A stretch of 64,000 nt of DNA from positions 18,186,439 to 18,250,438 of the forward strand of contig NC_052169.1 of assembly GCF_902713615.1 (NCBI RefSeq), read 5' to 3'. Positions 10,493-60,311 of the stretch are shown here, piece by piece. Positions within the stretch are counted from its first letter, which is position 1; every line of letters starts with the position of its first letter. The DNA is from Scyliorhinus canicula (Eukaryota). Made by a program: the position numbers and the translations under genes. Below the pieces are notes generated by a model. It made no database searches and was not told the DNA's origin. It saw nothing but the letters and a program-made list of their open reading frames with translations.

Positions 10493-11080
10493 CGTCACTA
10501 TTTGTATGAGTTCCACTGCTGGTCACTGAGGATAATCCAGATGTTGAGGTCACAGAGGATAATCCAGACGTTGAGGTCACTGAGGATAATCCAGATGTTG
10601 AGGTCACTGAGGATAATCCAGATGTTGAGGTCACTGAGGATATTCCAGATATTGAGGTTTGAGTCTTCGGAGATTCTGTATTTTCTGTCACAGTGAGGGA
10701 GATGTTTGCTGCAATCTTCCAGACAGGGTTCCCTGAGGCCTGAGTGTGCACAACACAGAGATACCTCCCAGTGTCCATCTCCGTGACTGAGTGAATAGTA
10801 AGGTTGTGAGCCTGGTTTGCATTTGTATGACTGTGTGAGCTTTGGTTAGAGATTCTTTGTGACAACTCTCTATCCACACAGCATCATTTGTTAGAATGTG
10901 CTTTATGATCCTCAATATGTACAGAGTGCAGACACTGGTTAATTTTTCCAGATGTGATCCAAAACAGAGTGAAGGGCCAGGATCCTTTATTCTCAAACAG
11001 GCAGGGTAAAGTCACATTCACTCCCTCTGACACTGACAGCAACGAGGGGATTTCATCAGTGGAAATTACTTTGTCTGAAT
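10493..11080 (-). pseudogene. Copy A exon 3, V-set D2 + mucin repeats, with premature stop
   Basis: tttctag acceptor, G|gtaagt donor; VTLPC, LFW, NLTI, DTGRYLC; TGA at 10884-10886. Confidence 0.85.
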
Positions 11081-11350: not shown

Positions 11351-11804
11351 TGTCAAAGGATTTCCAGAAGTCCATGTTAACCACATTCACTGCATTTCTC
11401 CATCTACCTTGTCTGTTACGTCCTCAACAGTTTGTCAAGCACATCGGGGGGAATTTTCATTTTTTTCTAGCACAACGGCTCAATGCCAGCTTTTCCATCC
11501 AGACGTTTTGAAACTCAGTCAAAAGAAATCCTGGGGGCGGGTCCCAGGACATCACTCTGACGGGATGGGCTCTGATTGAACCTGCCTACCAGAAACTTCA
11601 AGAGACCCGAGCGCCCTTCGATCCAAACAGAATTAAACTAGAGAGAGGTGTCGTCCCTCCCGGAAATGAGGTGCTCCCCCATAAATACACCTCTCGCTCG
11701 ACAAGCCCCACCAAGCACGCAACCCCCGCCCCCTCCACCAGGAATATCCCCCTCCCCATACAGCTCCCCATTATCTTACCCGCACCTCTACTGGGAACTG
11801 CAAT

Positions 11805-21659: not shown

Positions 21660-24600
21660 GGCCTGGTTTCCCTCTCACTGTCCAGTAGCTGCATCCACCC
21701 CAGTCACAGACTGCTGACCACTTCCCAATCAGTACTTCCTGTCCTGGGGGGTGCAAGCGGTCATTGTGCTGGCCAATGAACAGCTTCACCATGGAGCCGC
21801 AGAATGCATACGGCGGATCAGTGTGGGGGAACGAGCGGCAGTCACGTGGCTGTTGTTTAGAACACCTATTTAAACATGTGAAACTAGCACAATGGCTACT
21901 GTGGGGATCCGAGGAGGGGAGTAGCCATCTTCAAAACTGGGAAGTCAGCCCGGGGGCACCGGGTCCACTGACCCACTGCTCGGGGGGAGGCGGAGCCACC
22001 GGGGGGAGGGGGATGGGGGGGAGGAGATAGGCTCGGTTGGGAGGGTGGGCCGCCATCGTTGGGGGAGGGTTGCCCCTGGGCTGGGGGGGGGGGTGAGAGG
22101 GGTCAGCGCCCAGGGGTATGCCATGCCACTCCCCTGGACCATTTATACCCATAACTTGGGCAGCTCCAGCTGCTGCCTGTCTGTCCCACCGAACAGCCCC
22201 TGACAGAGCCCCGTCCGTGGTAATTTGGTGAAGGTCACTTTAACCCTCACAGACCATGGCAACCATTGGCCGCACAGCTGAAGGCTTTTAAAAAAACAAA
22301 ACATTTTTCTCTAAATTTAGATTACCCAATTATGTTTTTCCAATTAAGCAGCAATTTAGCGTGGCCAATCCACCCATCCTGCACATCTTTAGGTTGTGGG
22401 GGTGAGACACAAGCAGGCACGGGGAGAATGTGTAAACTCCACACGGACAGTGACCCGGGGCCGTGATCGAGCCTGGGTACTCGGCGCCGTGAGGCAACAG
22501 TGCCAACCACTGCGCCACCATGCTGCCCTTGCTGAAGCTAATGGTGAATTGGCAATTCTCGGAATGTAAGCACCTCAAAGCTCCCAAGTGGATCCGCGTG
22601 GGTGGACGTGACATGACGCAGGCAATTGTTACTGTCTAGCATCCCAATCAGAATGTGAGGCCTGGACACGTGTCCTGAACTCCGGAAGCATCAACACCAT
22701 AGAGGCAGCAGTCAAAGTTAGACCACCCAAGAGCTGGGACCCAGCACTGGTGCCAAGACCACAAGGACATAGCACATGTGCAATACCCTCTCCTTGTTGA
22801 TACAGAGCCTCCTGCGACCCATGAGGTCCAACGTCTATTCGATGGATGAGCGATGCCTGCACACCATTGGCCGTCACTGGCCTCGGTCCCTCCCTGTCCT
22901 GATGGGCGGCCGTTTCTTTCGGGTGTGAGACAGGACCCTGCACGTGAACCGCCGCGAACAGAGGGTGGGTGTGTGGAGCAGGGAGGGAACCAGTGTCTGG
23001 TCCAGGTCATGTTTCCAGCAGATGTCTGGGGTACAGGGTCTGAGGTCCACTGCCCAGAGGCCTCTGAAGGGGCGAGGGGTGTGTGTGCAGGGCGTGTTGC
23101 ATGACACCCTGAGAGATGGCAGGGAATGTAATGGTTAGGCCGCTTGAGGGCTCAGAGAGCACAGGGTGGAAGCCATACTGATTGTCAGTCTCATGCTATT
23201 TCCAATTCCTTACAGATATTATATGATGGATCATATTTTGGATCCTGCGCAAGTTGCCCTCGTGGTGGTGTTGGAAACCCAGGAGGTAGACAGCAAAGAA
23301 GGCAGTGGCAGCACCGTTTACACAGACTCAAAGTGAAGATTCACATGCAGGGTCCTGTCCCACACCCGGAGGAAACGGCCGTCCATCAGGACAGGGAGGG
23401 ATCGAGGCCAGTGACGGCCAATGGTGTGCAGACGCCACTCATCCTTTGAATAGACATTGGTCCTCGTGGGCCTCAGGAGGCTCTGTCTCAACAAGGACGG
23501 TAAGACACATGTGCTATGTCCTTGTGGACTTGTGGAGGATACCCACTCCTGGTGGCTGTCAAGGTCACCACAGCCCTGAATCTTTACACCTCGGGTTCAT
23601 TCCAGGGCTCGAGCAGGGAATTGTGTGGCATATCCCAACCTACAGCCCAAAAGTGCATCCATGAAGTCATGGATGCCCTGTTTACTCGGCAGCTGACTAC
23701 ATAAACTTTGACCTGGATCAGGCCCATCAAGATGCCCAGGCAGCAGGATTCTCCACCATCATTGGGATGCCCCAGGTCAATGGGGTAATAGATGGTACGC
23801 ATGTCGCCATGCATGCACTGGGCGGTCCGCGATTTACCTTCATCAACAGGAAGGAATTCCACTCCCTAAACTTCCGACTTATATGCAACTACCACCTCAA
23901 GATCATGCACATGTGTGTACGCATCCCAGGGAGTGTGCACAACAGCTATATCCTGGGGCAGTCGGAGATCACTGGCATCTTCGAGGGACATCCCAGGGTG
24001 ACTGGCTGGTTCTTGGGGGATAAGTGGTATCTTCTTCGGACCAGGCCAATGACACCAGTACAGAGACCAGAGACCAATGCAGATACTCGATATAACGAGG
24101 CCCATGTGGCCAGCCGGGCTGTCATTGAGCGGTGCATCGGACTGCTGAAAAGTCGGTTTTGTTGACTCAACCGCTCTGGGGTGAACTGCAACACGTCCGG
24201 GAGGGTCGCCTGCTTCATGGTGATCTCCTGTGCCCTCCACAACCTTCCACAGCAGCAGGGCGACGTGCTAGAAGGTGGAGGAGGAGGAACATGCGGCCAC
24301 CTCCGAGAATGGGGACAAGGAGGAACCAGAGGTTGGGCCCAGGGAGGACCCATGGGACCAGCCAGAGGGTAACGGCAGGAGGTGGTGGTGAGGGATTGGC
24401 ATGGCCAAAGGACCAGGGAGGCCTCATTCTCATAGCACCTGCTTTGTCTGTCATATCTCCCCCTCTCTCCTTCCCACCCACTGTCCCCCATACCCGTGCT
24501 CCACCCAGTCTGCCTCCACTTCTCTTTCCCTTCCCCCCCCGACCATCCCTCCACCCACCAATTACCAGTCACCGCATCCCCCCTTCCCCTGTCCCACCCT

Positions 24601-30727: not shown

Positions 30728-30993
30728 CTATAACTGATTAAGCTCAGGTGCCTCTGTTTCAGAATAAATAGGGTTTTCTTCCATTTTTAGCGGGCCATGT
30801 TTTGGGTCATTTTCCTCCAGGTGGGACTGTGTCTCCGTGTTTCTGAGACTCCCAGTCTCAGGGTAGCTGATCAAAGAGTAAGCCTGGTCATCAGATGACA
30901 CAATGGGATCTTGCTCTTTCAATGGTGACTGGTCATTGAGTTCAGTGGCTGGAGAGGTTTCAACCTGACGCCCATGGTTCAGGTGGTCTTTGC
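30728..30993 (-). CDS. Copy B exon 10 (QAYSLI, NPIYSET)
   Basis: Paralog of 4967..5232. Confidence 0.8.
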
Positions 30994-33900
30994 CTAGGTA
31001 TTAAGAGAGATCGTGTTTAAGGAGGCTCGCCAGCAATCGGAGGCAAATAATGACAGCGAACAGTTTAGTTCCATGAGATAAAGGTTTAGGAGCTTTCAAA
31101 CAGTTACAGGTTGGATTGTACTGAAAGATTAAAGCTACTTACGTTTCGCTCCCTGGGTTTCAGTTTTGTCTCCATCACTTCGGAAAACAGAAAATGAAAA
31201 ATGTGAAAACTGAGTCACAAAAGATTCAAGTAATATTTTAATATCTCTCATTGGAGTCTTGATTCAGCCACTTTCTCCCCAAGGTCTGGATTTGAACCCA
31301 GCCCAGGCTGAAATTCTCTCATTCACATTGCTTCTCTCTCTCGTTGCTTCTCTGAACCTCTCTGTCTGTCAGTCTGTCTAATTCTCTCCTTGACTTCCTG
31401 TGTCTCTCTCGCTGACACTCTGGCCAAACTGACCAACTGTGGCTGCCGGGGCGGGGGGGGGGGGGGGGGGGGGGGGGATGCGTAGACCTGTGAGGGCAGA
31501 GGGGTGGGGTAGGGTGAACTACACGCTACCAGCCCATCCATTCAGTTGCAGGTGATCCCATAACTCAAAACAAAATGCATGCCAGGCCAAACGCATGTGC
31601 AGAAACAACCAGCAAAGGAAGGAATTGGGGACAAAATCCTTCCCTGGAAGGCCCGAACCACCAGGATACAGGTGAAAGGCCGAAATACGGGACAGTCCAA
31701 CCTGGTCAGGATTTTCTGGCCCAACCAATCATCACGGGCAGGGTGGAAAATTTGACAGACCTGCAAAAGATCCATTGACTTTGAACGGGAGCAGAAAATC
31801 CTCGTCGTGGCTGCCTTTCTTCCTTGTTTCTTTCTGTGATGGGCTCTCTCCACTTCTCTCTCCNNNNNNNNNNNNNNNNNNNNNNNNNNNNNNNNNNNNN
31901 NNNNNNNNNNNNNNNNNNNNNNNNNNNNNNNNNNNNNNNNNNNNNNNNNNNNNNNNNNNNNNNNNNNNNNNNNNNNNNNNNNNNNNNNNNNNNNNNNNNN
32001 NNNNNNNNNNNNNNNNNNNNNNNNNNNNNNNNNNNNNNNNNNNNNNNNNNNNNNNNNNNNNNNNNNNNNCTCTCCCCTTCCCTCACTTCCCTCTCTGTCT
32101 GTCTCTCACTCTGTCTCTCGCAGGGTCCTGTATCGGCAGCCACAGCTGCGAGGGGCACTCCGGGGCCCTGCTAGGCCCCTGCAAAATGGAGAATCACTCT
32201 GGACTACCTCCAGGAAAGTCCAGAGTGATTCGCACCCGTTTTCTCACGGGTGTGGGGACACAGCCCCATTATCATTATCATGTGGGGACAATCAGGCCTA
32301 AAGCTATGATCTGCAGATTTAAACAGATATAAATGGGAAACCCCGAGTGGAATTCTCTGATAATGGGGCCATGTCCCCAAGCCCATTTTGCAGGGGGCTT
32401 GCAGGGCCCCGGAGTGCTCCTCGCAGCTCCGGCTGCCGATATGGGGCCCTGCACTTCCAGCCGCGGGTCCGTGCATGCGCGCGACGGTCATCTGCGGCGG
32501 CGGCCCCATGGAACACCGTAGGCCTGCCCCGCCAATATAGCCCCCCCCCCCAACCGAGATCACACTTGCCAGCTGATCAGTGGCCCCTGATCGTGAGCCT
32601 GGCCGTCCTGGAGGCCCCCCCCCCCCCCGGTGATGGTCCGCAGCCGCCACTCCGAATTCCCGCCGGGTGGAACCATGAGTGAACCATGCCGACGGGAACT
32701 CGGCCAGTTATCGGCAGAGAATCGCCGTGGGGGCCTCTTACAATGGCCCCCAACTGGCACTGTGTGCGTGATTGGCGGCGATGCTTCGGTCCCCGGGGAA
32801 TCGCAGGAGTGGCGTCAGACCCGATCGCGGGTCTGACACACATTCTCCGCCCCCATGCCGAGCGCGATTGCGGCGCGGAGGCTCAGAGAATACCGGCCCT
32901 AACTTTTAAAGTCGGGATTCCCGTCGTGTCAGTGATGGGGACAATCGAGTGGGGAAATTCCACCAGCGTAAAATCCATTTTGGACTCCCGCTCCATACTC
33001 CACCCCCTCTGTTGTTCCTGCCCCCTGAAAACTGGGGTGGCAAATCCTGGTCTATGATTTAAAATTGTTGAATTAATTGTTGAGTCTAGAAGGCGAAAGT
33101 TGAAAGATGAGGGGCGGGATTCTCCCCTACCCGGCGGGGCGGGAGGTCCCGGCGGGATGGAGTGGCGTGAACCACTCCGGCGTCGGGCCGCCCCAAAGGT
33201 GGGGAAATCTCCGCACCTTTAGGGGTCAAGCCCTAAAATTGAGAGGGAGGCGGCGCTGGAGTGGTTGGCGCCACGCCGGCCGGTGGGAAAGGCCTTTGGC
33301 GCCATGCCATCCGGTGCCGAAGGGACTTCGCCGGCCGGCGGAAGTCCGCGCATGTGCCGTAGCGTCAGCGGCTGCTAACATCATCCCCGCGCATGCGCAA
33401 GGGAGGGGGTCACTTCCGCCTCCGCCATCGTAAAGACTATGGCGAAGGCGGAAGGAAAAGTGTGCCCCCACGGCACAGGCCTGCCCGCCGATCGGTGGGC
33501 CCCGATCGCGGGGGCCAGGCCACAGATTGCCCCCCCCCACCAGGACTCCGGAGCCCACCCGCGCCGCCTGGTCCCACCAGTAAGGTAGGTGGTTTGATTC
33601 ACGCTGGTGGGACCGGCATGAAAGCGGCGGGCCGGAGAATCGCCGGGGGGGGGGAGGGGGGGTCCACCCAAAGGCGCGGCGCGATTCCCACCCCCACCGA
33701 ATCTCTGGTGCAGGAGACTTTGGGAGGCAGTGGGGGCGGGATTCACGCCGGACCCCGGCGATTCTCTAACCTGGCGGAGGGGTCGGAGAATCCCGCCCGA
33801 GGTGCTGGTCCTCGAGCTTGCCTTGAGCTTCACTGGAACATTGCAGCAGGCCAAGGCCGGGAGGTCAGGGCAAGGTGGAGAATTAAAATGACAAGTAACT

Positions 33901-36900
33901 GGGAGCTCGGGCTCACACTTACAGACTGAATTGAGGTGTTCTGCAAAATGGTCACCCAGTCTGCATTTGGTGTTCCCCAATGTAGAGGAGGCCACACAAT
34001 GAGCAGCAAATACAATATGTTGGCTACATTGTAAAAGGTACAAGTAGGTTGCTGTTCCACTGAGAGTGAATGTTTGGGGCCTCGGATGGTGAGAATGGAG
34101 GAGATAAAAGGAGAATCCTCAGCCGAGGGGAAAGGAAGACACATTGAAAGTGCTTATATAAAAGGTTACATTGTCCACAAAGATGCGATAGAGATGGAGA
34201 AATTGGAAAAATGAACTGGAGGTGGGAGAAAGTGTAGTCAAGGGAGTGATGCAAGTCAGTGTATTTATAGTATTGGTATCCCAGAAATGGAGGCCGCAAA
34301 GTCAAGGGAGGGAAGTGAAGAGTCAGAGATGGATGAAGTGAAGGTGACAGAAGGGTGGAAATTAATGTAAAGTCAATGAAAGTTTCCAATTCAGAGGGTG
34401 AGAGCTTATAAGGCTGGTCAAAGTGGAGAACAGCCATTGATCAGCATGGAATCCTTCACTATATTAACCATTCTCTAATCCTCCACTCCCCCCTAAAGAT
34501 CACTGTTGTCAGTTCCGGAAGTTGCTGGAGCTGATGTCTGACACTCTGTGTACCTTTTAACTGCTGATTCATCGATCAAACAGTACACATGCTCTGTGGA
34601 GGCAGAGGTAGAGTGGGTGCCCTGTCCTTCTCCAGGCCTTGGCTGGCTCATTGCCGTTGGAACACTGGACACTGCGTACGCAACATGTTCATTTTCATCT
34701 GTCTGTTCCTTCCTGGGAAACACAGAGTATGGTAAACCTAGAAGAAAGGATTGCAACGCAAGGTCTGCTGTCAGTTTCAACTCTCAAAATGATAGGCTCG
34801 GTAATGTTGGGCAGTAATCCTGGTCACTTACATTCGTCCTCCTGTGTCAGTTGCACATCACCGTCCCTACAGTTATTAAAAAATAGATTTGTAAATATTT
34901 CATTAAATGGACAGGACAATGCAGAAATGTCCAAAAACTGAGTGAAAACCCTGCCTACCTCTGTCCGGGTGCCGAGGATCCTTCACAAATGTAACAAGAT
35001 TGGAAAGACAAAGTTAAAAATCTTTGGAAGGAGTCTGCATTAAATATAATTTTCTAGATTTAAATTCAACATTTTATAACTCTGACTTACCTTTGCCCAT
35101 TTGTCGTTTCCGTCTGATTATGCAAATTGCCCCAACAATGCAAATAAGTGCAACCACACACACTATGGCGATGATCACAGGTTTATTTTTACTGTTTAAA
35201 TCTACAGAGGAGAAGCAACATTAGATTCAGGTTGTGCAATCCTGTATTATACGTCAGGTTTCTTACACTGCCTACCTAACTTTCTAGTTACAATCTGGAA
35301 TAGTAAATGGCGAAGGGAGGAAATTGAACCAATTTACAATGGGTACAAACTGTACAAACAGACCCAGAATTTCTCAGCTGGAGTTATTGACATTAAATGA
35401 TTCATATCGCGGATGATGTGTTGGGTAAGCTGGGTCTGCGAGGACTGCGTTTACCATAGCAGTGAGAGAGACAGGCTTCCAACACTTGGAGAAATGCAAC
35501 TCGATTTTATTGAACTACCAACTATTAAACATACTTTAACTGTGGGTTGACACTATGCTGAGTTGACTGAAGACCCGAGGCTAACCTGACCAGACTATCT
35601 TACTACCAGATGGTGTATGTTCTAGTTGCTGCTCACAGGCTCTGGCTGTCTCAGAGGCTGCATCCCAAGAGAGCGGGAAAACTAGTGCCCTCTGGCTTTA
35701 TAGTGGCCGTGTCCTGTCTGGTGGTTGGCTGCTGTGTTCTGTGTTCATTGGTCATCATGTGTGTCAATCAATGTCTGTCTGTGCACCATCATATATTTGT
35801 GTGTATATTATGACAGCTTACTTACTTACTTTCACTTTTGAGAGGAGTTACACTGGTGGTCACTGGAGATATTTTGAGTGTTGAGTTGAGGGTGTCTGAC
35901 GATACACTACTCCAGATTGCAGTCAAGGTTACCTGGTCTGGGGAACTAACATTCCAGGTAGAATCTGGAATGATAAATGGCGAAGGATGGAAATTGAGCC
36001 AGTTTACAACGGCTACAGACTCCCTCAGCTGGAATTCTTGATATTAAATGATTTATATCATATTGTCCATTGTCTGACTTACCGTCACTATTTGTATGAG
36101 TTCCACTGCTGGTCACTGAGGATAATCCAGATGTTGAGGTCACTGAGGATAATCCAGATGTTGAGGTCACTGAGGATAATCCAGATGTTGAGGTCACTGG
36201 GGATAATCCAGATATTGAGGTCACTGAGGATATTCCAGATATTGAGGTTTGAGTCTCCGGAGATTCTGTATTTTCTGTCACAGTGAGGGAGATGTTTGCT
36301 GCAATCTTCCAGACAGGTTTCCCTTTGGCCTGAGCGTGTACAACACAGAGATACCTCCCAGTGTCCATCTCCGTGACTGAGTGAATAGTAAGGTTGTGAG
36401 CCTGGTTTGCATTTGTAGGATTGTGTGAGCTTTGGTTAGAGATTCTTTGTGACAACTTTCTATCCACACAGCATCGTGTGTTAGAATGTACATCCCCTCC
36501 CTCAATATGTACAGAGTGCAGACACTGGTTAATTTCTCCAGATGTGATCCAAAACAGAGTGAAGGGCTGGGATTCTTTATTCTCAAACAGGCAGGGTAAA
36601 GTCACATTCACTCCCTCTGACACTAACGAGGGGTTTTCATCAGTGGAAATTACTTTGTCTGAATCTAGAAACAACATTTAAAAGAATAATTGTTACTCGA
36701 ATAATCTCCAACGTGGTACTTTAGGGGCTGGTTTAGCTCAGTGGGCTAGACAGTGGGTTTGTAATGCAGAACAAGGCCAGAGCACGGGTTCAATTCCCGT
36801 ACACGCTGAGAATTCTGAATTCTCCCTCTGTGTATCCGAATGTGGCGACTAGGGGATTTTCACAGTAACTTCATTGCAGTGTTAATGGAAGCCTACTTGT

Positions 36901-39900
36901 GACAATAAAAGATTATTGTTATTGTCAAAGGATTTCCAGAAGTCCATGTTAACCACATTCACTGCATTTCTCCATTTACCTTGTCTGTTACGTCCTCAAC
37001 AGTTTGTCAAGCACATCGGGGGGAATTTTCATTTTTGTCTAGCCCACCGGCTCAATGCCAGCTTTTCCAGCCAGACGTTTTGAAACTCAGTCAAAAGAAA
37101 TCCTGGGGGCGGGTCCGAGGACGTCACTCTGACGGGATGGGCTCTGATTGAACCTGCCCACCAGGAACTTTAAGAGACCCGAGCGCCCTTCGATCCAAAC
37201 AGAATTAAATTAGAGAGAGGTGTCGTCCCTCCCGGAAATTAGGTGCTCCCCCATAAACACGCCTCTCGCTCGACAAGCCCCACCAAGCACGCAACCCCCG
37301 CCCCCTCCCCCAACCAGGAATATCCCCCTCCCCATACAGCTCCACATTATCTTACCCACACCTCTACTGGGAACTGCAATGCCAGGGGCAGTGCTGGGGG
37401 CAATGCCTGGGGACACTGTCTGGGCACAGTGCCAGGAGGCAGTGTCTGGGGACAGTGCCTGGGGACACTGTCTGGGCACAGTGCCAGGAGGCAGTGAATG
37501 GGGACAGTGCCTGGGGACACTGTCTGGGCACAGTGCCAGGAGGCAGAGTCTGGGGACAGTGCCAGGAGGCAGTGTCTGGGGACAGTGCCGGGGGGAGTGT
37601 CTGGGCACAGTGCCAGGAGGCAGTGTCTGGGGACAGTGCCAGGAGGCAGGGTCTGGGGACAGTGCCAGAAGGCAGTGTCTGGGGACAGTGCCAGGAGGCA
37701 GTGTCTGGGGACAGTGCCGGGGGGAGTGTCTGGGCACAGTGCCAGGAGGCAGGGTCTGGGGGCAGTGCCAGGAGGCAGTGTCTGGGGGCAGTGCCAGGAG
37801 GCAGTGTCTAGGGGCAGTGCCAGGAGGCAGTGTCTGGGGGCAGTGCCAGGAGGCAGTGTCTGGGCACAGTGCCAGGAGGCAGTGTCTAGGGGCAGTGCCA
37901 GGAGGCAGTGTCTGGGCACAGTGCCAGGAGGCAGTGTCTGGGCACAGTGCCTGGGGACACTGTCTGGGCACAGTGCCAGGAGGCAGTGTCTGGGGACAGT
38001 GCCAGGAGGCAGTGTCTGGGCACAGTGCCAGGAGGCAGTGTCTGGGCACAGTGCCAGGAGGCAGTGTCTAGGGGCAGTGCCAGGAGGCAGTGTCTGGGCA
38101 CAGTGCCAGGAGGCAGTGTCTGGGCACAGTGCCTGGGGACACTGTCTGGGCACAGTGCCAGGAGGCAGTGTCTGGGGACAGTGCCAGGAGGCAGTGTCTG
38201 GGCACAGTGCCAGGAGGCAGTGTCTGGGCACAGTGCCAGGAGGCAGTGTCTGGGCACAGTGCCAGGAGGCAGTGTCTGGGGACAGTGCCGGGGGGAGTGT
38301 CTGGGGGCAGTGCCAGGAGGCAGTGTCTGGGGACAGTGCCAGGAGGCAGTGTCTGGGGGCAGTGCTGGGGGGAGTGTCTGGGCACATGCCAGGAGGCAGT
38401 GTCTGGGGTCAGTGCCGGGGGGAGTGTCTGGGCACAGTGCCAGGAGGCAGTGTCTGGGGACAGTGCCAGGAGGCAGTGTCTGGGGGCAGTGCCAGGAGGC
38501 AGTGTCTGGGGACAGTGCCAGGACGCATTGTCTGGGGGCAGTGCCAGGAGGCAGTGTCTGGGGACAGTGCCAGGAGGCAGTGTCTGGGGAAAGTGCTGGG
38601 GGGAGTGTCTGGGGGCAGTGTCTGGAGGCAGTGTCTGGGGGCAGTGCCAGGTGGCAGTGTCTGGGGGCAGTGTCTGGGGGCAGTGCTGGGGGGAGTGTCT
38701 GGGCACAGTGCCAGGAGGCAGTGTCTGGGGACAGTGCCAGGAGGCAGTGTCTGGGCACAGTGCCAGGAGGCAGTGTCTGGGCACAGTGCCAGGAGGCAGT
38801 GTCTGGGCACAGTGCCAGGAGGCGGTGTCTGGGCACAGTGCCAGGAGGCAGTGTCTGGGCACAGTGCCAGGAGGCAGTGTCTGGGCACAGTGCCAGGAGG
38901 CAGTGTCTGGGGGCAGTGTCTGGAGGCAGTGTCTGGGCACAGTGCCAGGAGGCAGTGTCTGGGCACAGTGCCGGGAGGCAGTGTCTGGGGGCAGTGTCTG
39001 GAGGCAGTGTCTGGGGACAGTGCTGGGGGGAGTGTCTGGGCACAGTGCCAGGAGGCAGTGTCTGGGCACAGTGCCGGGGGGAGTGTCTGGGCACAGTGCC
39101 GGGAGGCAGTGTCTGGGGGCAGTGCCAGGAGGCAGTGTCTGGGGGCAGTGCCAGGAGGCAGTGTCTAGGGGCAGTGCCAGGAGGCAGTGTCTGGGGGCAG
39201 TGCCAGGAGGCAGTGTCTGGGGGCAGTGCCAGGAGGCAGTGTCTGGGCACAGTGCCAGGAGGCAGTGTCTAGGGGCAGTGCCAGGAGGCAGTGTCTGGGC
39301 ACAGTGCCAGGAGGCAGTGTCTGGGCACAGTGCCAGGAGGCAGTGTCTGGGGGCAGTGCCAGGAGGCAGTGTCTGGGGGCAGTGCCAGGAGGCAGTGTCT
39401 GGGCACAGTGCCAGGAGGCAGTGTCTGGGGGCAGTGCCAGGAGGCAGTGTCTGGGGGCAGTGCCAGGAGGCTGTGTCTGGTCACAGTGCCAGGAGGCAGT
39501 GTCTGGGGACAGTGCCAGGAGGCAGTGTCTGGGCACAGTGCCAGGAGGCAGTGTCTGGGCACAGTGCCAGGAGGCAGTGTCTGGGCACAGTGCCAGGAGG
39601 CAGTGTCTGGGGCAGTGCCAGGAGGCAGTGTCTGGGCACAGTGCCAGGACGCATTGTCTGGGGGCATGTCGGGGGGAGTCTCTGGGCACAGTGCCAGGAG
39701 GCAGTGTCTGGGGACAGTGCCAGGAGGCAGTGTCTGGGGAAAGTGCTGGGGGGAGTGTCTGGGGACAGTGTCTAGAGGCAGTGTCTGGGGGCAGTGCTGG
39801 GGGGAGTGTCTGGGCACAGTGCCCGGAGGCAGTGTCTGAGGACAGTGCCAGGAGCCAGTGTCTGGGGACAGTGCCGGGGGGAGTGTCTGGGCACATGCCA

Positions 39901-41867
39901 GGAGGCCGTGTCTGGGGGCAGTGCCGGGAGGCAGTGTCTGGGCACAGTGCCAGGAGGCAGTGTCTGGGCACAGTGCCAGGAGGCAGTGTCTGGGCACAGT
40001 GCCAGGAGGCAGTGTCTGGGGGCAGTGCCGGGAGGCAGTGTCTGGGCACAGTGCCAGGAGGCAGTGTCTGGGCACAGTGCCAGGAGGCAGTGTCTGGGGA
40101 CAGTGCCGGGAGGCAGTGTCTGGGCACAGTGCCGGGAGGCAGTGTCTGGGCACAGTGCCAGGAGGCAGTGTCTGGGGACAGTGCCAGGAGGCAGTGTCTG
40201 GGCACAGTGCCAGGAGGCAGTGTCTGGGCACAGTGCCAGGAGGCAGTGTCTGGGGACAGTGCCAGGAGGCAGTGTCTGGGCACAGTGCCAGGAGGCAGTG
40301 CCTGGGCACAGTGCCGGGGGGAGTGTCTGGGGACAGTGCCGGGGGGAGTGTCTGGTCACAGTGCCAGGAGGCAGTGTCTGGGGGCAGTGCCGGGGGAGTG
40401 TCTGAGGGCAGTGCCTGGGGACAGTGTCTGGGGGCAGTGCCGGGGGGGGAGTGTCTGGGCACAGTGCCAGGAGGCAGTGTCTGGGGACAGTGCCGGGGGG
40501 AGTGTCTGGGGTAGTGCCGGGGGGCAGTGTCTGGGGGCAGTGCCAGGAAGCAGTGTCTGGGGGCAGTGCCGGGGGGAGTGTCTGGGGACAGTGCCAGGGG
40601 GCAGTGTCTGGGGGCAGTGCCAGGGGGGAGTGTCTGGGGGCAGTGCCGGGGGGAGTGTCTGGGGGCAGTGCCGGGGGGAGTGTCTGGGGGCAGTGCCGGG
40701 GGGAGGGTCTGGGGGCAGTGGCAGGAAGCAGTGTCTGGGGGCAGTGCCGGGGGGAGTGTCTGGGGGCAGTGCCGGGGGGGAGTGTCTGGGGGCAGTGCCG
40801 GGGGGAGTGTCTGGGGGCAGTGTCTGGGGGCAGTGCTGGGGGGAGTGTCTGGGGGGAGTGTCTGGGCACAGTGCCAGGAGGCAGTGTCTGGGCACAGTGC
40901 CGGGGGGAGTGTCTGGGCACAGTGCCAGGACGCAGTGTCTGGGCACAGTGCCAGGAGGCAGTGTCTGGGGGCAGTGCCAGGAGGCAGTGTCTGGGGGCAG
41001 TGCCGGGGGGAGTGTCTGGGGGCAGTGCTCGGGGGAGTGTATGGGGACAGTGCCGGGGGGAGTGTCTGGGCGCAGTGCCAGGAGGCAGTGTCTGGGGGCA
41101 GTGCCGGGGGGAGTGTCTGGGGGCAGTGCCTGGGGGCAGTGTCTGGGGGCAGTGCCAGGGGGCAGTGTCTGGGGGCAGTGCCGGGAGGCAGTGTCTGGGG
41201 GCAGTGCCGGGGGGCAGTGTCTGGGGGCAGTGCCAGGAAGCAGTGTCTGGGGGCAGTGCCGGGGGGAGTGTCTGGGGGCAGTGCCAGGAGGCAGTGTCTG
41301 GGGGCAGTGCCGGGGGGAGTGTCTGGGGACAGTGCCGGGGGGAGTGTCTGGGGGCAGTGCCGGGGGGAGTGTCTGGGGACAGTGCCGGGGGGCAGTGCCT
41401 GGGGGCAGTGTCTGGGGACAGTGCCGGGGGGAGTGTCTGGGGACAGTGCCAGGAGGCAGTGTCTGGGGGCAGTGCCAGGAGGCAGTGTCTGGGGGCAGGG
41501 CCGGGGGGAGTGTCTGGGGACAGTGCCAGGAGGCAGTGTCTGGGGACAGTGCCAGGAGGCAGTGTCTGGGGGCAGGGCCGGGGGGAGTGTCTGGGGACAG
41601 TGCCTGGGGACAGTGCCAGGAGGCAGTGTCTGGGGGCAGGACCGGGGGGAGTGTCTGGGGACAGTGCCTGGGGACAGTGCCTGGGGACAGTGCCTGGGGG
41701 CAGTGTCTGGAGCACTGTCAGGATACTTACCGGATATAATCCTCCCCCCCCCCCCCTGGGGCTGTATTAACTGTGCCCCCCCCCCCCCCCCCCCCCCTCC
41801 TCCACTCCCCCTGTTCTCTTTACCACATCCCCGTTTGTCAAGCCAACATGACATCACGTCAGCCGGG

Positions 41868-41900: not shown

Positions 41901-44900
41901 ACATGACATCACGTCAGCCGGGTTGGGGGGGGATAACTCAGATGAAATGTGTGACCTGACATTGTGTTAATGGTATTAGGACGGAAGTTGAGATTTTTGT
42001 TCAACCTTCCAACCAGACAGATTGCAAAAGGAGTGGGAGGCTGTGAAGTACCAAGTGTACATTCTGAGTGTGTTTCTGTGCATCAGTGACAGTGAGTAAC
42101 ACCGGGGCAGACCCATCCTTTGAAAAAACGCTGTGATGCAGATACTAACTATCTGAACACTCAAGAGCTTTTAGTCAATGGTAACACTGCATCAACCCCC
42201 TCCATCCACTCTCACAGAGGATTAACATGGAACACAGGTTGAATGTTGGGTCACAATTTCACGTTTCACACGGGTGAGAATGTAACCCATGGCCTGTGAT
42301 TCCACCGGACTGGATCTAAGATAAATTGAAGGTCTGCCTCCCCATGACCTTACCAGCAACAGCCGTCCACATGATTGTCACATGGAAACATTCTTCCCTA
42401 CACCTGTGTTCTAATTTATTTTCACCAGTCTTAGCTCAAATTCCTTGTTCCAGTATCTTAACGTATCTTCAGTAGAGTCTGAACTTGCTGCATGAACGGT
42501 GCTGAATATAATTTTATGATTACTCTTCAGTTCATGTGTGTCACTGGCAATTTGCTATTTGTTGCCCATCACTAGTTGTCGTGGAGAAGTTGATATTCTA
42601 CCTGCCCCGCGGTGTCCATGTGGTGTGGGTACCCCCAAATGCTGTTGGGAGGGAGATCCTGGAGTTTGCCACAGTGAAGGAATGAAGATACAGGCCCCGA
42701 TCTAACCCTGTATCTAACCCGGACCCCGGTGTAAAAGCCTTTTGGGGAATCTTGGGTGGGATTCTCCGCTACCCCGCGAGGCGGGCCGTTCAGGCGCCGA
42801 GGAGTGGCGTGAACCACTCAGGCGTCGGGCCACCCGGAAGGTGCGGAATCCTCCGCACCTTCAGGGGCTAGGCCAGCGCCATCGGAGTTGGCATCGTGCC
42901 AACCGGCACCGAAGGGCCTCCGCCGGCCGGCGTGAGTTGGTGCATGCGCGGGAGCGCCCCCGTCAACCCAGCGCATGCGCAGTAGAGTTATTCTCCGTGC
43001 CGGCTATGGCGGACCGTTAAGCGGCCGGCGCAGAGGGAAAGAGTGCCCTCACGGCACAGGCCCGACCGCGGATCGGTGGGCCCCGATTGCAGGCCAGGCC
43101 ACCGTGGGGGCACCCTCCAGGGCCAGATCCCCCCGCGCCTTCCCTGAGGACACTGCAGGCCGCCCGTAGAGCCAGGTCCCGCCGGTACCGACCTGGTTTG
43201 ATTTACGCCGGTGGTACCTGCCAAAAACAGGTGGCCGCTCGGCCCATCGCGGGCTGGAGAATGGCCGGGGGGGATATTCCTGGTGGGGGATGGGGGGGGG
43301 GGGGGGTTGTGTGCTTGGTGGGGCTTGCCGAGGGAAGGGCGTGTTTATGGGGGAGCTCCTCATTTATAGGAGGGACCAAACCTCTCTTAATTTAATTCTG
43401 TTTGGATCGAAGGGCGCTCGGGTCTCTTGAAGGATTCACTCCGCTCTCCGGCCTAGCGGGGGGGTCGGAGAATCCCGCCCCATGATGGATTCTCCGCTCC
43501 CGCCGCCAATCCCACCTGTCAAAAACATGGGCAGAAAATGCCGGCCATCCTCTTTGGAATCTGTGTTGGTTGCGCCTCACATTCTATTATTTATTTACAT
43601 ACTTGATAATCTCATCTCAGTAAAGAATCTAAAATTGTCCCGAATGCCCACTAACTGTCCTAATGACCCCCGAACATCTCAGCTTAAATCTCTCCAATGA
43701 GCCTGGAATAATTCCCCTGATCTCTCCTGTGCACATACCGCTCAGATCTATCACCAGGAACAGGTCGTAGGTTTCACATCCTTTCTGTGTCAGGCTGGCC
43801 CAGGATGGACATTTTGATGATCCTCCTTTTCGGGTGGAATCTTGAACGGTGCAGGTAAATACCATTGAGTGATCTGGCTTCACAGCAAATGCCTTATCTT
43901 CATTTAATTTGCATTTCTGACACTGCAGTTTCCCTTTCCGATTCTTTTTCCGATTCTTTTTCTGAGGACCGATATTTTCGCAATCACCGTCTCCACGTTG
44001 TTTTCCACATGTTTCCATAGTTGCTGTTTCAGGACTGAAATCACTCATTGTGCACAAGGTTTTTACAGACCCAGCACCGGTACATTGTAGAATGGTGACA
44101 TCTCCTGATCTTCGGGGGAAGAGATAGGTGGATCCTGCAGGGAAAAGGACAGAATCAGATGAAGATAAATAACATTCCACGCAGAAGGATAATTAAATCT
44201 CAATGCCAATCAAAGCCTCGCACAGTAAACGTAAAATTGTAATTTTTGTTACACCACACAACGAGCTGCACAGTTAATTGCTGTTCCATTCATAAATCTT
44301 TGCAATCTATCAATATTTGCCAATTCAGAGCAATAGATTTTACAGAATTTACAGTGCAGATGGAGGCCATTCGGCCCATCGAGTCTGCACCGACTCTCGG
44401 AAAGAGCACCCTGCCCAAGCCCATACCTCCACCCTATCCCCATAACCCAGTAACCCCACCTAACACTAAGGGCAATTTGGACACTACGGGCAATTTAGCG
44501 TGGCCAATCCACCTAACCCGCACATCTTTGGACTGTGGGAGGAAACCGGAGCACCCGGAGGAAACCCACGCACACACGGGGAGAACGTGCAGACTCCGCA
44601 CAGTGACCCAAGCTGGGATTCGAACCTGGGACCCTGGAGCTGTGAAGGATTTGTGCTAACCACTGTGCTACCGTGCTGCCCTGAATAGACTGACTTTTTC
44701 CTGAAGGTAAATAATAATAATGCAACTTCGATCATCATCCTCTCTAAATTTTAAATTGTATTAATTTACAGGATGTGGCGTCACTGGCTTGGGCGGTGTT
44801 TATTCCCCATCCCTAACTGCCCTTGAGATGATGGTGGTGAGCACAGTGCTGCTTCAGTGGGATTTCCACAACTTTGACCCAGTGGCAGTGAAGGAACAGA

Positions 44901-47085
44901 GAAAGGTGGATCCTGCAGGGAGAGGACAGAACCAGATGGAGATAAATAACATTCCACAGAGGAAATATCATTCCAATTCTGTCATCTCCCCTTGATATTC
45001 AATGGCAACAATATTCTCGAGATTACCATTGTTGCTCGTTGTGTTCTCTCTTTAATTGTCTCTGTTTATGGCGGCTAATATGGTCGCCGTTCTTAATTCT
45101 AATTACGTTTGCTCAAGAGTCGCCAGGTATCTCTCGATACCACCACAAGGTTCAAAACCGAATACTGATCAAAGACTCGATACACCAGTTAGTAAGTTCG
45201 AAATCAATGCTCATTTATTTACACACACAGTCAAATATACTCATGCACAAAACTGTACCAACTAAACTATCACTACTACTAAAGCCTATACTTAGCTTCA
45301 GGCGCCCACTCAGTCAGAGGAACAATGGCCGTTGTCCGGTTCTGAGGCTGCTGGGGTTGAGCTGGTACGGAATAGCAGATAAGAGCGTCTGCCTCATAGC
45401 GTGCATTGACTTTGGACTTACCTGTTCTGGTGCAGCTGCTAGGCAGCTCTCTCCTCACTGAGAGCCAAGGCCAAGAGAGCGATTCTCTCTCGGGGGCTTC
45501 TTCTTATACCCAAAGGGGGCTTCGCGCGCTTTTGGGCGGGCCTTGAACTTGGTTCCAATTAATTGGACTGCATCTAGATCATTCCTATCGATTTCCTCCA
45601 ATAAAGGGGTGGCTGCCCTGATCGCTGGGCGGGCCCTAGGTGGCCGTTGGCCTGCTTTGTTCTAGTCTCCTCTGGCACCGGGGTGTCTGCCTTAGTATCG
45701 TTTACCTAAATGTTACCCTTTTGTCCCCGGAGATGGCCCATTAGTATGGCAATGGCTTTGCAGTATCGGCCTAGTCTGGGAGCTACAGCTCCAATCAACA
45801 GACAAACCTTGCACCTGCTTGCTTTCTCAGCATTGTCCATTTTCCCTGCATTCTTTGTAAAGTGTCCATTTTGTAATCGTGACGTGGCCGTCCCAGATGG
45901 CCACACCATTGACCATTGACTGAAGCTCAGTTGGCTGGACAGCTGGTTTGTGATGCAGACCAAGGCTAATAGTGCAGTTCAATTCCGGTACTGGCTGAGG
46001 TTATTCATGAAACTCAACCTTGTCCCTCGCCTGAGGTATGGTGACCCTTAGTTTAAGTCACCACCAGCCAGCTCTTCGCCCCTCAAAGGGGGAAGCAGCC
46101 TATGGTCATCTGGGACTATGGCAAGGTTACCTTTTACATCAAACTGGCTTCCAAGAGCAGGAATTACAAGGCTGGGAATTCTGTGGTGTGTAACTCACCC
46201 CCATGACCTTCAAAACCTTTCCACCATCTGTAAAACAGGTCAGGAGTTGAATTTTGACACAGAAACATGAATATTGCATAGAACAGTACAGCACAGTACA
46301 GCCCCTTCGGCCCACGATGTTGTGCCGACCATTTATCCTAATCTAAGATCAACCGAACCTACACTCCATCAATTTACCGCTGTCCATGTGCCTGTCCAAG
46401 AGTCACTTAAATGTCCCTAATGACTCTGACTCCACCACCTCTGCTGGCAGTGCATTCCACGCACCCACCACTCTCTGTGTAAAGAACCGACCTCTGACAT
46501 CTCCCCTATACCTTCCTCCAATCACCTTAAAATTATGTCCCCCCGTGACAGCCATTTCCGCCCTGGGGAAAAGAATATTGCTGCAAAGTCAGGGTGAAGG
46601 GGATGTATAAACGTGGCAGAATGTGATGAAAATTTGGATTCAATAATACTGAACCATTACTTCTATAAGTATTGTATTTAATTGTGGTTCTTTGCCAGAA
46701 CTAACTGGCCAACTCACTCTCTCTACAGTCCTGTTTCTTTCACAACTTCAAATACTTATCTAATTCTCAGTTAAAAGATGAATGATCTCTGCTTCAACCA
46801 CTGCTTGTCAAAGCATTCCATTGCCCCCACTCTCTGTGTAAAGAATTGCTCCTAGTCTCTCCTCACTCTCTGAATCAAACTGATGGTCCATGATCGCACC
46901 ATGATAAAGTAACACAGCAAACACCATCATTTGACTGTGTTAAACATCTACACAAGAACAGCAATGATTTATATCCTTTTTGTCCAGATGAGGAATATGT
47001 TGAAGATTAATGGAGACTATTCGTCCTTACCTGCAACATGTTGGAACAGGAGAAAAAGACCCAGAAACAAAGTATCGAGAGCCAT
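30728..47085 (-). CDS. Gene copy B: intact 10-exon type I IgSF receptor, ~597 aa (leader, Cys-rich Ig-like D1, V-set D2 + mucin stalk, stalk 2, TM, Tyr-motif tail); CD300/MDIR-like architecture
   Basis: join(complement) 47031..47085, 43739..44134, 36083..36664, 35830..35937, 35091..35201, 34959..34980, 34832..34866, 34554..34737, 31143..31177, 30728..30993 = 1794 nt. All GT-AG, phases 1,1,1,1,1,2,1,2,1 are compatible, no internal stop seen. Confidence 0.85.
31143..31177 (-). CDS. Copy B exon 9
   Basis: Paralog of 5382..5416. Confidence 0.7.
31864..32069. other. Assembly gap (206 N) at the paralogous position
   Basis: Ns. Confidence 0.99.
34554..34737 (-). CDS. Copy B exon 8, Tyr-motif exon
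   Basis: Paralog of 8964..9147. Confidence 0.75.
34832..34866 (-). CDS. Copy B exon 7
   Basis: Paralog of 9242..9276. Confidence 0.7.
34959..34980 (-). CDS. Copy B exon 6
   Basis: Paralog of 9369..9390. Confidence 0.6.
35091..35201 (-). CDS. Copy B exon 5, TM (PVIIAIVCVVALICIVGAICIIRRKR)
   Basis: Paralog of 9501..9611; tgtag acceptor. Confidence 0.9.
35830..35937 (-). CDS. Copy B exon 4, stalk
   Basis: Paralog of 10240..10347. Confidence 0.75.
36083..36664 (-). CDS. Copy B exon 3, V-set D2 + five TSTSGLSSV-type repeats
   Basis: 582 nt, open; Cys-Trp-Cys V-set core with DTGRYLC; N-glycosylation sequons NVT, NQS, NLT, NIS. Confidence 0.9.
37378..41718. repeat. Same minisatellite expanded to ~4.3 kb
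   Basis: Read directly; same flanks as in copy A. Confidence 0.95.
43739..44134 (-). CDS. Copy B exon 2, D1
   Basis: 396 nt, open, same splice sites; within ORF 43629..44180. Confidence 0.75.
47031..47085 (-). CDS. Copy B exon 1, signal peptide
   Basis: Same as copy A exon 1. Confidence 0.85.
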
Positions 47086-49589
47086 TTCAAATTCCACACC
47101 GTCTTTGCTCGGTGAAGAAGTAAAAAAACAGCAGCATGGGGAATTACGAATATTGGTCAAAACGGATTATTTTCTACTACCCGAGTGGTAGGTTCGCCCT
47201 CACATCCTGATCTGTGAGAAAGAGAAGTTGGACTTGCTTCCTGTTTGACCAACTCTGATGAAATGTGTGGCCTGACGTTATGTTAATGGTATTGGGACGG
47301 AAGTTGAGATTTTTGTTCAACCTCCCAACCAAAGAAATGACAAAAGGTGTAGGAGGCTGTGAAGTACCAAGTGTATGTTCAGAGGGTGTTGCTGTGTTTC
47401 AGGTTCCATCCCGCTCTGAGTCACTGTCCGTGTGGAGTTTGCACATTCTCCCCATGTCTGCGTGGGTTTCACCCCCACAACCCAAAGATGTGCAGGATAG
47501 GTGGATTGACCACGCTAAATTGCCCCTTAATTGAAAAAAAAATAATTTGTATATAAAAGAAAGGGGGATCATTACACCAGTGAAAAATAATTGGGCACTC
47601 TAAATTTAAATTAAAAAAAAACATTCTTCCCAACATCTGTGTTCAAATTTATTTTCACCCGGCTTAGTTCAAACTCCTTCTTCAAATTATCTCAATGTAT
47701 CTTCAGAGAGTCTAAACTTGCTGCATGAACGGTGCTCAATATAATTTTGTGATTACTCTTCAGTTCAAGGATATTACTGGCAATTTGCTATTTGTTGCCC
47801 ATCACTAGTTGTCGTGGAGAAGTTGATGGAGAATATTCTACCTGCCCCGCGGTGTCCATGTGGTGTGGGTACTCCCACAGTGCTGTTAGCAAGGGAGATC
47901 CTGGGGATTGCCACAGTGAAGGAATGAAGATAAAGGGCCCGATCTACCAGCCGCAGTGCGCCAGGCGTGAATATGAGTGAGTCGGTTAGCTAGTGGGAGA
48001 GGCCAAAATTGGGAACCACGCTGGGCAGCGATTGGTTTCTGATCTAACTGGCCTGTTCCCGTTGGCAAGATCCAGATCCCGCTGCGGCGTAGTGAGAAAC
48101 CAATAATCACTGATTAAGACCAATCATTAATGTGAAGGACTCCCTATCGCAGTGTTTTCAAACTTTTTTTCACTTTTACCAACCGACGGACCTTTGGGAC
48201 CCACTCCAGCCAACATTCGCAACCCACGCCGGCCAACCTTAGCGACCCACGCCGGCCGACCTTAGCGACCCATGCCAGCCGACCTTTGCGACCCACGCCG
48301 GCCAACCTTAGCGACCCACGCCGGCCGACCTTAGCGACCCATGCCAGCCGACATTAGCGACCCACGCCGGCCAGCCTTAGCGACCCACGCCGGCCAACCT
48401 TAGCAACCCATGCCTGCCGACCTTAGCGACCCACACCGGCCGACCTTTGCGACCCACCATTATTGCTTACCTTTAAAGCGGCAGGTGAGCCTGTTTGGTC
48501 CTCATGATCTCACTTGCTTCGTCATTCAATGTTACATTTCTGCGAAGTCTGACGTCAGCTGACGATTTAAGTTCTTGCTGCATCCTTTGAAAAAAATCAA
48601 GAACTTTGTCTTAGTCTTCAAATGCCATTGAATATTTGAGGGTTTTAAACTTTCATTTGCCAGCACCTCCCTGCATATAACACACATGAACTTTGCATCC
48701 TGACTTCCATTGGCACAATTAAAGCCATACCTCAAGACATCATCTTTATACTGCTTTGTTTCTGATTTCAGTTTCTTCTTCATTGTTTATTCACCAGAAG
48801 TCCTGGAGCTCTGGATACAGCTCACAGCAGCACAGCTTTGTCCTGCTGTGGACTCTCTGTGGAAGCTCTCTCCAGCAGATTCTGTTGTGAGATCCTGGGC
48901 AGTTTGTGTCTCTGCCTCTCTCTTCCTTATTACAAAATATTCCATCTTCAGTTCTTCACACAGTCCTGTTGCTTGCTTGCTGGCAGCTACAAAAAGGAGG
49001 AATCTCTCCTCCATGACTTTCCGCCCAAAGCACAGGCGCACAGGGAGCGTGACATCATATATGTGCTGGGCGCATGACCTTCTCTCAGCTGCTGCCTCTC
49101 GCGGAAAGACTCATTATTCATACTTAAAGGTCTGTCGCAGCCGGCATTCTTTTTTTTACTTTGAAACTTTATTACCAATACCTCATTTTTCTAAGTTTTC
49201 CAAGTGAAACAATTTCAGTTGAACATGCACATCCTTACATTTACACACAAACTTTGTTTTAAATATATTCCCATTTCTTTAGAAATTTGAACAAGTATAG
49301 AAAATGTATGATCTTGTTTTTATTTTGCAAACTATGACTTTAGCCGAGACGAAGTAACTTGTCAAACACACACAATGTCACAATATTTCTTACCGGTTCC
49401 ACTGCATTGCACCATCCAAACATCCAAGTCATCTCCTTCTCCATTCTTACGAAAAGCACTTCAACACTTACATCCTGGATTCCAGAGAGTGGTTACACAA
49501 AGTGATGACTGTGTAGCTTTCTTCCTGACATGTGTCAGCTGCTTTGACTGGCCTCATTTGATCGGTGTTCCTGGCTGACAAACCTGGCC

Positions 49590-59897: not shown

Positions 59898-60163
59898 CTA
59901 TAACTGATTAAGCTCAGGTGCCTCCATTTCAGAATAAATAGGGTTTTCTTCCATTTTTAGCGGGCCATGTTTTGGGTCATTTTCCTCCAGGTGGGACTGT
60001 GTCTCCGTGTTTCTGAGACTCCCAGTCTCAGGGTAGCTGATCAAAGAGTAATCCTGGTCATCAGATGACACAATGGGATCTTGCTCTTTCAACGGTGACT
60101 GGTCATTGAGTTCAGTGGCTGGAGAGGTTTCAACCTGACGCCCATGGTTCAGGTGGTCTTTGC
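59898..60163 (-). CDS. Copy C exon 10 (QDYSLI, NPIYSEM); the rest of gene C lies beyond the window
   Basis: Paralog of 4967..5232, open. Confidence 0.75.
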
Positions 60164-60311
60164 CTAGGTATTAAGAGAGATTGTGTTTAATGAGGCTCGC
60201 CAGCAATTGAAGGCAAATAATGACAGCGAACAGTTTAGTTCCATGAGATAAAGGTTTAGGAGCTTTCAACAGTTACAGGTTGGATTGTACTGAAAGATTA
60301 AAGCTACTTAC

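Follow-up and report, generated by a model that had tools for sequence, protein, structure and literature searches.

Why should two neighbouring copies of a receptor gene differ, in one of their immunoglobulin (Ig) domains, almost only by amino acid replacements? The question is raised by a 64,000-nt stretch of the genome of the catshark Scyliorhinus canicula (the window, whose positions serve here as coordinates), which, taken together with its flanks, carries four tandem same-strand genes, Z, A, B and C. They belong to a family of type I membrane receptors that occurs throughout sharks and is uncharacterised. Their layout comprises a leader, a Cys-rich first domain (D1), a V-set second domain (D2; residue numbers refer to its V domain), a Ser/Thr stalk and a transmembrane (TM) segment, followed by either a long tail with tyrosine motifs or a short tail accompanied by an Asp in the membrane segment. 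From the time at which A and B last had sequence in common, replacements have accumulated in the BC, C'-C'' and FG loops of D2 at roughly 8-19 times the rate of synonymous and intron sites, while the remainder of the ectodomain has evolved near-neutrally and constraint has persisted on the cytoplasmic tail. This loop-specific excess is probably, if by no means certainly, the product of diversifying selection on the loops within a tandem cluster that is prone to gene conversion.

Differences between the D2 V domains of genes A and B

The comparison concerns the following segments.

36258-36664, minus strand: segment of gene B exon 3 (D2) that encodes the V-set Ig domain and makes up the initial 405 nt of this exon, recognised from its open translation and from Pfam
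10668-11080, minus strand: V-set part of D2 of gene A, the comparison partner of 36258-36664
10493-11080, minus strand: exon 3 (D2 plus stalk) of gene A, the upstream twin of B, located by self-alignment, MAFFT and tblastn with Scyliorhinus torazame proteins
36568-36576, minus strand: BC-loop differences, E30 and Q32 in B versus G and W in A (GSW/ESQ; A at 10978-10986)
36489-36500, minus strand: C'-C'' hairpin patch, GGA GGG GAT GTA (GGDV) in B versus GAT CAT AAA GCA (DHKA, 10899-10910) in A, with 8/12 bases different
36316-36336, minus strand: FG-hairpin differences, A110, K113 and K115 in B versus T, S and N in A (TQASGN/AQAKGK; A at 10726-10746)
36624-36625, minus strand: place where B has lost 6 bp in frame; the segment, GCTGTC, is retained in A (11035-11040), in Z and in each of the 16 other shark sequences
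10884-10886, minus strand: TGA stop in D2 of gene A, where CGA stands in B (36474-36476) and CAA in Z; a CpG transition (C>T)

A codon-by-codon count finds 23 base differences between the two V parts, namely 21 replacement bases in 15 codons, one nonsense change and a single synonymous one (GTG/GTA). The original prediction, made from the sequence of the window, had counted about 21 replacement differences, one nonsense change, one synonymous change and one 6-bp in-frame indel, which is exactly what was obtained, and the three clusters that it named (GSW/ESQ, DHKA/GGDV with 8 of 12 nt different, and TQASGN/AQAKGK) are all present. With Z used as the third sequence, the changes can be assigned to lineages. 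The 6-bp indel is polarised as a deletion in B because Z keeps the segment, and the C'-C'' patch is derived on the B lineage because A matches Z and other sharks at this place; K43E, S81N, T110A and N115K are likewise derived in B. Changes that are derived in A, or in which A differs while B matches Z, are N10I, Q32W, the stop codon, K69E, P82H and K113S. Owing to its premature stop, gene A in this assembly is a null allele or a young pseudogene.

The differences between A and B are not assembly errors, since independent public runs contain both versions of the patch (B type: X1 and X5; A/Z type: X1, X9 and X12). At window position 36536 (codon 45, K/E), all contigs that cover the site in all four public runs carry the A/Z-type base, including those with the B patch, and the Glu43 of B may be private to the reference haplotype. 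With regard to the origin of the patch, a pattern search of the whole 4.2-Gb assembly, allowing up to 3 mismatches, returned only chance matches and no donor for the 8 bases. It was also seen that, through the patch, TGTACAT recurs 21 nt beyond its first occurrence (36489-36500 and 36510-36520), TGTACA being palindromic. There are thus hints that the patch arose by a mutation of templated or complex type and not by eight independent changes.

D2 scores 30.6 bits against the Pfam V-set profile (PF07686; curated cut-off 26, E=4e-7) and 34.9 bits against Ig_CD22 (cut-off 27, E=2e-8). The residues of the B-F disulfide, the strand-C Trp and the D-x-G-x-Y-x-C motif (C24, W38, D100, G102, Y104 and C106) are invariant in a 48-sequence alignment. 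An AlphaFold model of D2 from this alignment, with a predicted local distance difference test score (pLDDT) of 87 and a predicted template modelling score (pTM) of 0.81, folds as a standard V domain (strands A' B C C' C'' D E F G), with C' covering residues 46-54 and C'' residues 57-60. DSSP places the BC loop of the model at 28-33, the C'-C'' turn at 55-56 and the FG turn at 113-114, and the replaced residues are distributed over it as follows.

Residues 30 and 32: BC loop
Residues 55-58: C'-C'' hairpin
Residues 110, 113 and 115: FG hairpin
Residues 81 and 82: D-E loop
Residue 10: N-terminal segment
Residue 43: C-C' loop
Residues 62, 63 and 69: C''-D region

The replaced residues are enriched in the BC, C'-C'' and FG loops, with Fisher p=0.003 for the strict loops and 0.0015 when these are widened by 2 residues on either side. 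On the predicted structure, the changes therefore appear to cluster in the loops equivalent to the complementarity-determining regions (CDRs) of a V-set fold, as had been proposed. D2 also contains extra cysteines, C47 in strand C' and C64/C65 in the C''-D loop, which bring its total to five. From this odd count a disulfide between D1 and D2 is plausible, and it would bear on the freedom of the D2 loops.

Neutral baseline and rates of change

A flank that has been homogenised may be taken for a neutral reference, and a dN/dS signal may stem from one multi-nucleotide patch. Both situations are found at this locus, the first of them in the following tract.

46048-50046 versus 18122-22113: near-identical tract of units B and A that includes the leader exon and the 5' flank, with 4 mismatches in about 4 kb (about 0.1%)

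The stretches that neighbour this tract differ by 2-4% between A and B, and it looks like a recent conversion tract over the 5' ends of the genes. The original prediction had set the V domain against non-coding DNA from this region (~18000-22000 versus ~45930-49930); the near-identity of that comparator is real, but it is unrepresentative, given that the gene-body non-coding DNA of A and B differs at 224 of 9551 positions (2.35%) and the pooled synonymous sites of all exons at 14 of 378 (3.7%). The introns flanking D2 differ by 2.3% and 3.4%, and along the unit the divergence ranges from 0.0% to 7.9% per 500 nt. Because the earlier comparator lies in a recently homogenised tract, the fair contrast for the V domain is 2.4-3.7% and not ~0.1%, against which the replacement divergence of the V domain amounts to 6.5%.

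For the whole D2 V domain, Nei-Gojobori counting gives two synonymous differences (sd=2; 2/87 sites, pS 2.3%) and 20 replacement differences (nd=20) plus the stop, with an omega of 2.9 (Fisher p=0.19), and pairwise codon maximum likelihood (ML) with a shared synonymous rate and kappa gives an omega of 2.48 (p=0.013). The signal is much stronger in the loops. In a partitioned codon ML analysis with one synonymous rate for all exons, the strict loops reach an omega of 18.8 (likelihood ratio test statistic 27.8, p=1.4e-7), the loops plus or minus 2 residues 12.2 (p=2.5e-8), and the BC and FG loops, with the patch removed, 8-9 (p=0.002 and 1e-4). The same analysis yields 1.0-1.5 for the framework and about 1 for the stalk plus the TM segment. 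D1 has an omega of 0.8 (Nei-Gojobori) or 1.5 (ML); the count of about 13 replacement versus 4 silent changes given for this domain in the original prediction is close to the 12.5 versus 4.5 found by Nei-Gojobori, but these values are neutral-like and D1 does not count as evidence for selection. The tail exons have an omega of 0.28 (Nei-Gojobori) or 0.5 (ML), and on account of this low value both genes must have been constrained through most of their separate history.

Comparison with the introns leads to a similar picture. At the intron rate, 7.2 replacement or nonsense bases would be expected in the V domain, where 21 are observed (p=2e-5). When changes within 3 nt of each other are collapsed into one event, with the intron event rate of 1.86% as neutral, the whole V domain retains 11 events against 5.7 expected (p=0.03), the strict loops 4 against 0.43 (p=0.001), which is ~9- to 10-fold above the intron event rate, and the BC and FG loops alone 3 against 0.34 (p=0.005). 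Since neutral decay cannot exceed the neutral rate, the loop changes were either favoured by selection or imported. Comparisons with Z, which cover the S. canicula genes A, B and Z (the D2 of gene C falls in an assembly gap), give an omega of about 0.9-1.0 over the whole V domain for both A-Z and B-Z, and the Z branch itself carries 7 replacement versus 5 synonymous changes.

The positions at which A and B differ are also variable in other sharks. Site rates estimated from 16 non-canicula D2 sequences of nine other shark species are higher at the A/B-different sites (Mann-Whitney p=3e-4), and residues 55, 57 and 58 are the three fastest D2 sites of the family in this set. Furthermore, of the 16 positions that distinguish A from B, 10 also separate paralogs within another species (p=0.002). 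The paralogs of Pristiophorus differ in the same three loops (odds ratio 15.8, p=1.5e-6), and those of S. torazame do so weakly (p=0.048).

Selection, conversion and other explanations

If diversifying selection within a conversion-prone cluster is the cause, positive selection would keep and add differences on the contact surface formed by the loops, and frequent gene conversion between paralogs, together with unequal exchange, would homogenise the surrounding exon and introns. The raw material would be mixed, comprising single and tandem double substitutions, one complex replacement of 8 bases, the deletion of 6 bp and, probably, conversion in short patches. Of the selection proposed originally, the replacement excess of the loops above neutral stands (omega 8-19, p<=0.002), whereas a dN/dS above 1 for the domain as a whole does not hold robustly: apart from the Fisher p of 0.19 reported above, the ML omega falls to 1.84 (p=0.12) once the four patch codons are removed. 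The label 'pathogen-driven' went beyond the data. D2 is membrane-proximal, so that its CDR-equivalent loops face D1 and may not offer an open surface for binding.

Several further points weigh against selection on the loops. At the DNA level, the comparison comprises one paralog pair and one outgroup (Z), the codon models count multi-nucleotide changes as independent, and the loop boundaries were set after the data had been seen, though following DSSP. The introns also hold mismatch clusters, with up to 7 mismatches per 12 nt. An omega of about 1 for the framework, D1 and the stalk is consistent with relaxed constraint, and, with a stop codon in copy A, part of the change on the A lineage may be unconstrained drift. 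Given the membrane-proximal position of D2, its loops may pack against D1 instead of a ligand. Moreover, the A-derived states I10, W34, E71 and S115 are also found in paralogs of S. torazame. Since states are shared in this reticulate manner, part of the A/B difference predates the A/B split or was moved by conversion, and such older or moved states break the clock that is assumed in the rate tests. Finally, the D2 of gene C, hidden in the assembly gap, may be a donor of the 8-base patch.

Exchange between the paralogs is itself well documented in the family. The D2 tree groups sequences by species and not by tail type, with a support of 86-100% for the species groups, although both long-tail and short-tail forms occur in distant shark lineages, and the D2 exon is therefore in concerted evolution. 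At the level of single states, A has I10 and W34 (the latter two bases away from Q) in common with P0120 of S. torazame, a short-tail gene, and B shares N10 and Q34 with P0118 of the same species; K115 is common to B and Z, whereas S occupies this position in A and in nearly all other sharks. In public contigs, states occur in mixed combinations, and an abundant Z-type transcript in run X9 apparently lacks the 6-bp segment of the reference Z. The B deletion, E43 and G56 are unique, at the protein level, among 19 family sequences. The lineage labels of the changes are interleaved along the domain, with 11 runs in 14 events against 7.9 expected (P of this few runs or fewer = 0.98). A single conversion tract that also raised synonymous and intronic divergence had been named at the outset as the competing explanation; one large tract from Z is ruled out by the interleaved labels and by the unraised divergence around D2 (pS 2.3% in the V domain, 2.3-3.4% in the flanking introns, 2.35% in the gene body).

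Conversion acting without selection on the A/B pair, whereby old loop variation between paralogs or alleles would have been imported by short patches from Z, C or unsampled haplotypes, is possible but doubtful. The family differs mainly in its loops, so that any import would appear replacement-rich and loop-clustered, and the concerted evolution of D2 exons within species across long- and short-tail genes, the reticulate states, the mixed contigs, the X9 transcript and the hidden D2 of gene C are all in keeping with it, as are the swings in A-B divergence along the unit, which mark recent conversion tracts, and the homology of Z to A and B, limited to the V exon and ~60 nt of the intron upstream, with a dS of 6-7%. 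Nevertheless, the synonymous divergence of the D2 V domain is not above that of the introns and is below that of A and B versus Z, the near site-by-site alternation of lineages would need many tracts shorter than 15 nt, the assembly offers no donor for the 8-base patch, and the deletion and the states E43 and G56 of B are unique to it; besides, old variants that survived only in loops despite homogenisation would themselves require selection. A related proposal combines import with selection: loop states such as I10/W34 versus N10/Q34, G55 versus D55 and Q63 versus R63 would be old cassettes that predate the split of S. canicula and S. torazame, kept by balancing selection and shuffled between long- and short-tail genes by exon-limited micro-conversion. 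We think this unlikely; if true, it would amount to a trans-species and trans-paralog repertoire of binding surfaces, and to germline diversification like that of KIR and MHC in an unnamed receptor family.

Relaxed constraint together with clustered mutation, in decaying copies with a weakly constrained framework and with the patch and doublets as single complex mutations, seems quite improbable. It would account for the stop in A, for the omega of about 1 in the framework, D1 and stalk/TM, for a whole-domain omega that is not above 1 without the patch, for mismatch clusters in the introns and for the fact that B has lost the near-invariant Tyr56 and carries a unique 2-residue deletion, both of which are odd for the family. 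However, drift cannot beat the neutral rate, and loop events exceed the intron event rate 9-10 times even with clusters collapsed (p=0.001-0.005); the tail exons are still constrained, B is intact and has a B-type D2 contig in the RNA-type run X1, and the same positions differ between paralogs in other sharks. That A and B are two haplotypes of one gene misplaced in tandem, or products of assembly error, is hardly credible. The units are 97-99% identical over long stretches and N gaps occur at 6157-6406 and 31864-32069, but three distinct contigs cover the exon in DNA run X5, from a library whose year of deposition is not that of the likely source run, both patch types recur in independent runs, S. 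torazame and other sharks have several family genes per species, and the units differ in minisatellite length (1.6 versus 4.3 kb) and in an inverted 410-bp segment. Diversifying selection on the D2 loops, amid frequent conversion, thus keeps the grading given to it at the outset.

The tandem genes and their relatives

The model of gene B was built from tblastn with S. torazame proteins, which align exon by exon, and from splice joints in public contigs. Its exons, all on the minus strand, are given below.

47029-47085, minus strand: leader exon (A: 19103-19159); the A and B copies are identical
about 43739-44140, minus strand: Cys-rich D1 exon (A: 15808-16206), from tblastn
36083-36664, minus strand: whole exon 3, with the V domain and a Ser/Thr-rich stalk of 27-bp repeats, from splice joints
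35830-35964, minus strand: optional stalk cassette exon, 135 nt, in-frame and Ser/Thr-rich, from splice joints and translation
35090-35201, minus strand: transmembrane exon (A: about 9500-9611), from joints, tblastn and translation
34958-34979, minus strand: small exon
34830-34865, minus strand: small exon
from 34735 downward, minus strand: tail exons
30731-30991, minus strand: last coding exon, cytoplasmic tail (...YSLI...NPIYSE...), from tblastn

Exon 3 is a single exon of 582 nt, phase 1 at both ends, with TTCTAG|AT at the acceptor and G|GTAAGT at the donor. The joints 35964>36083 and 35201>36083, which have CT..AC ends (GT..AG on the minus strand), are present in the RNA-type runs X1, X9 and X12 and absent from the DNA run X5. 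The cassette is both included and skipped in RNA-type contigs (joints 35964>36083, 35201>35830 and 35201>36083). The reading frame of gene B is intact across D2, the transmembrane segment and the tail.

Self-alignment gives the tandem unit a length of 26-28 kb. A and B have the long tail. Gene Z precedes the window by about 16-21 kb (coordinates -15704 to -20978) and is compact and short-tailed, with an Asp in its membrane segment, LVLYVVALICIDGVICII, which includes ALICIDGV and is followed by the short tail. The pN between the D2 of Z and those of A and B is about 0.056-0.068. In the assembly, the D2 of Z has one extra base that leads to a frameshift near codon 117; as a Z-type contig of high depth in run X9 can be aligned to B gap-free, this frameshift may be a polymorphism or a fault of the assembly. 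Z also has, ~60 nt upstream of its D2 exon and immediately before the real acceptor, a short duplicate of the acceptor region (..CAATGTTGTTTCTAGATTCA..). The homology of Z to A and B begins near this duplicate, which may be the footprint of a conversion or an insertion. In the last gene, C, the 3' exons occupy 59901-60378, and D1, which resembles that of Z and not those of A and B, lies at window coordinates 67773-68156, just past the end of the window. Between them, a run of N at window coordinates 65463-66940 occupies the place where the D2 exon of C is expected, and whole-genome searches with DNA and protein found no D2 other than those of A, B and Z.

Members of the family occur in S. torazame, Mustelus, Heterodontus, Cetorhinus, Carcharodon, Hemiscyllium, Chiloscyllium, Rhincodon, Heptranchias and Pristiophorus, and the annotation calls every one of these entries uncharacterised. 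Three family genes are annotated on a single contig of S. torazame, and other sharks have two to four. Relatives at 30-42% identity are found in sturgeon, teleosts, newt, lizards, turtles, alligator and kiwi, unnamed or automatically named 'pIgR-like' or 'CD276-like'. Among proteins within a set length range of the query, to which the search was restricted, no short allele or transcript proteins with the 133-aa domain were found; a phage database gave no match to this vertebrate locus, and the literature searched contained no paper on this receptor family.

Attempts to place the genes in a named receptor family returned generic matches. D2 is matched only by generic Ig profiles (V-set, Ig_CD22, Ig_3) and by generic V domains in a Foldseek search of the PDB, and D1 has no Pfam match. 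The best matches of phmmer among PDB sequences, which are weak (E about 7e-4) and cover the F-G region only, are to V domains of the pIgR/CD300 type, from which D2 differs by having no C-C' disulfide and no Cys in strand C (FTLFWITS). In the translations, the long tail carries YxxI and NPxY motifs, but it has no canonical immunoreceptor tyrosine-based inhibitory motif (ITIM), (S/I/V/L)xYxx(I/V/L), since LPYSVF, VAYAVS, HVYCLI, QAYSLI and NPIYSE do not fit at positions -2 and +3 together; a canonical immunoreceptor tyrosine-based switch motif (ITSM) was not seen either.

Clusters of paired activating and inhibitory receptors of the Ig superfamily (IgSF), with fast-evolving ligand-binding domains, are represented by KIR/LILR, SIRP, CD300 and PILR in mammals, by NITR and NILT in teleosts and by MDIR in skate. 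Binding loops that diverge fast between tandem paired receptors are a hallmark of arms races in host-pathogen or self recognition; such divergence has been amply documented for mammals and teleosts, but hardly for cartilaginous fish. The catshark locus behaves like these clusters, though without demonstrable membership in any of them. Its genes are tandem on one strand, have near-identical ectodomains joined to a long tail with tyrosine motifs (A, B) or to a short tail with a charged membrane residue (Z), and combine V-set loops that diverge faster than neutral DNA with concerted evolution by conversion and with null copies. It departs from them in its D1, which is Cys-rich and outside Pfam, in having the membrane-proximal domain as the fast one, and in the charged membrane residue of Z, an Asp and not the usual Lys or Arg. 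NILT and MDIR are mentioned in PMC3022915 and PMC3031540. With four genes, one V domain and three loops, in a family conserved across selachians, the locus makes a compact and testable case.

Duplicated genes whose exons differ more than their conversion-homogenised introns include the red/green opsins, RHD/RHCE and MHC. As in these, the introns and flanks of the catshark genes are partly homogenised (0.0-0.4% over 4 kb) and specific codons still differ; unlike in these, most gene-body introns differ by 2-3% and the contrast is limited to loop codons.

Two repetitive elements lie close to the exon. A short interspersed nuclear element (SINE) derived from a transfer RNA adjoins the D2 exon in both A and B (36720-36910), in contrast to the acceptor duplicate of Z, and the intron between D1 and D2 contains a G+C-rich minisatellite with a period of ~26 bp, which extends over 4.3 kb in B (37376-41723) and 1.6 kb in A (11800-13374).

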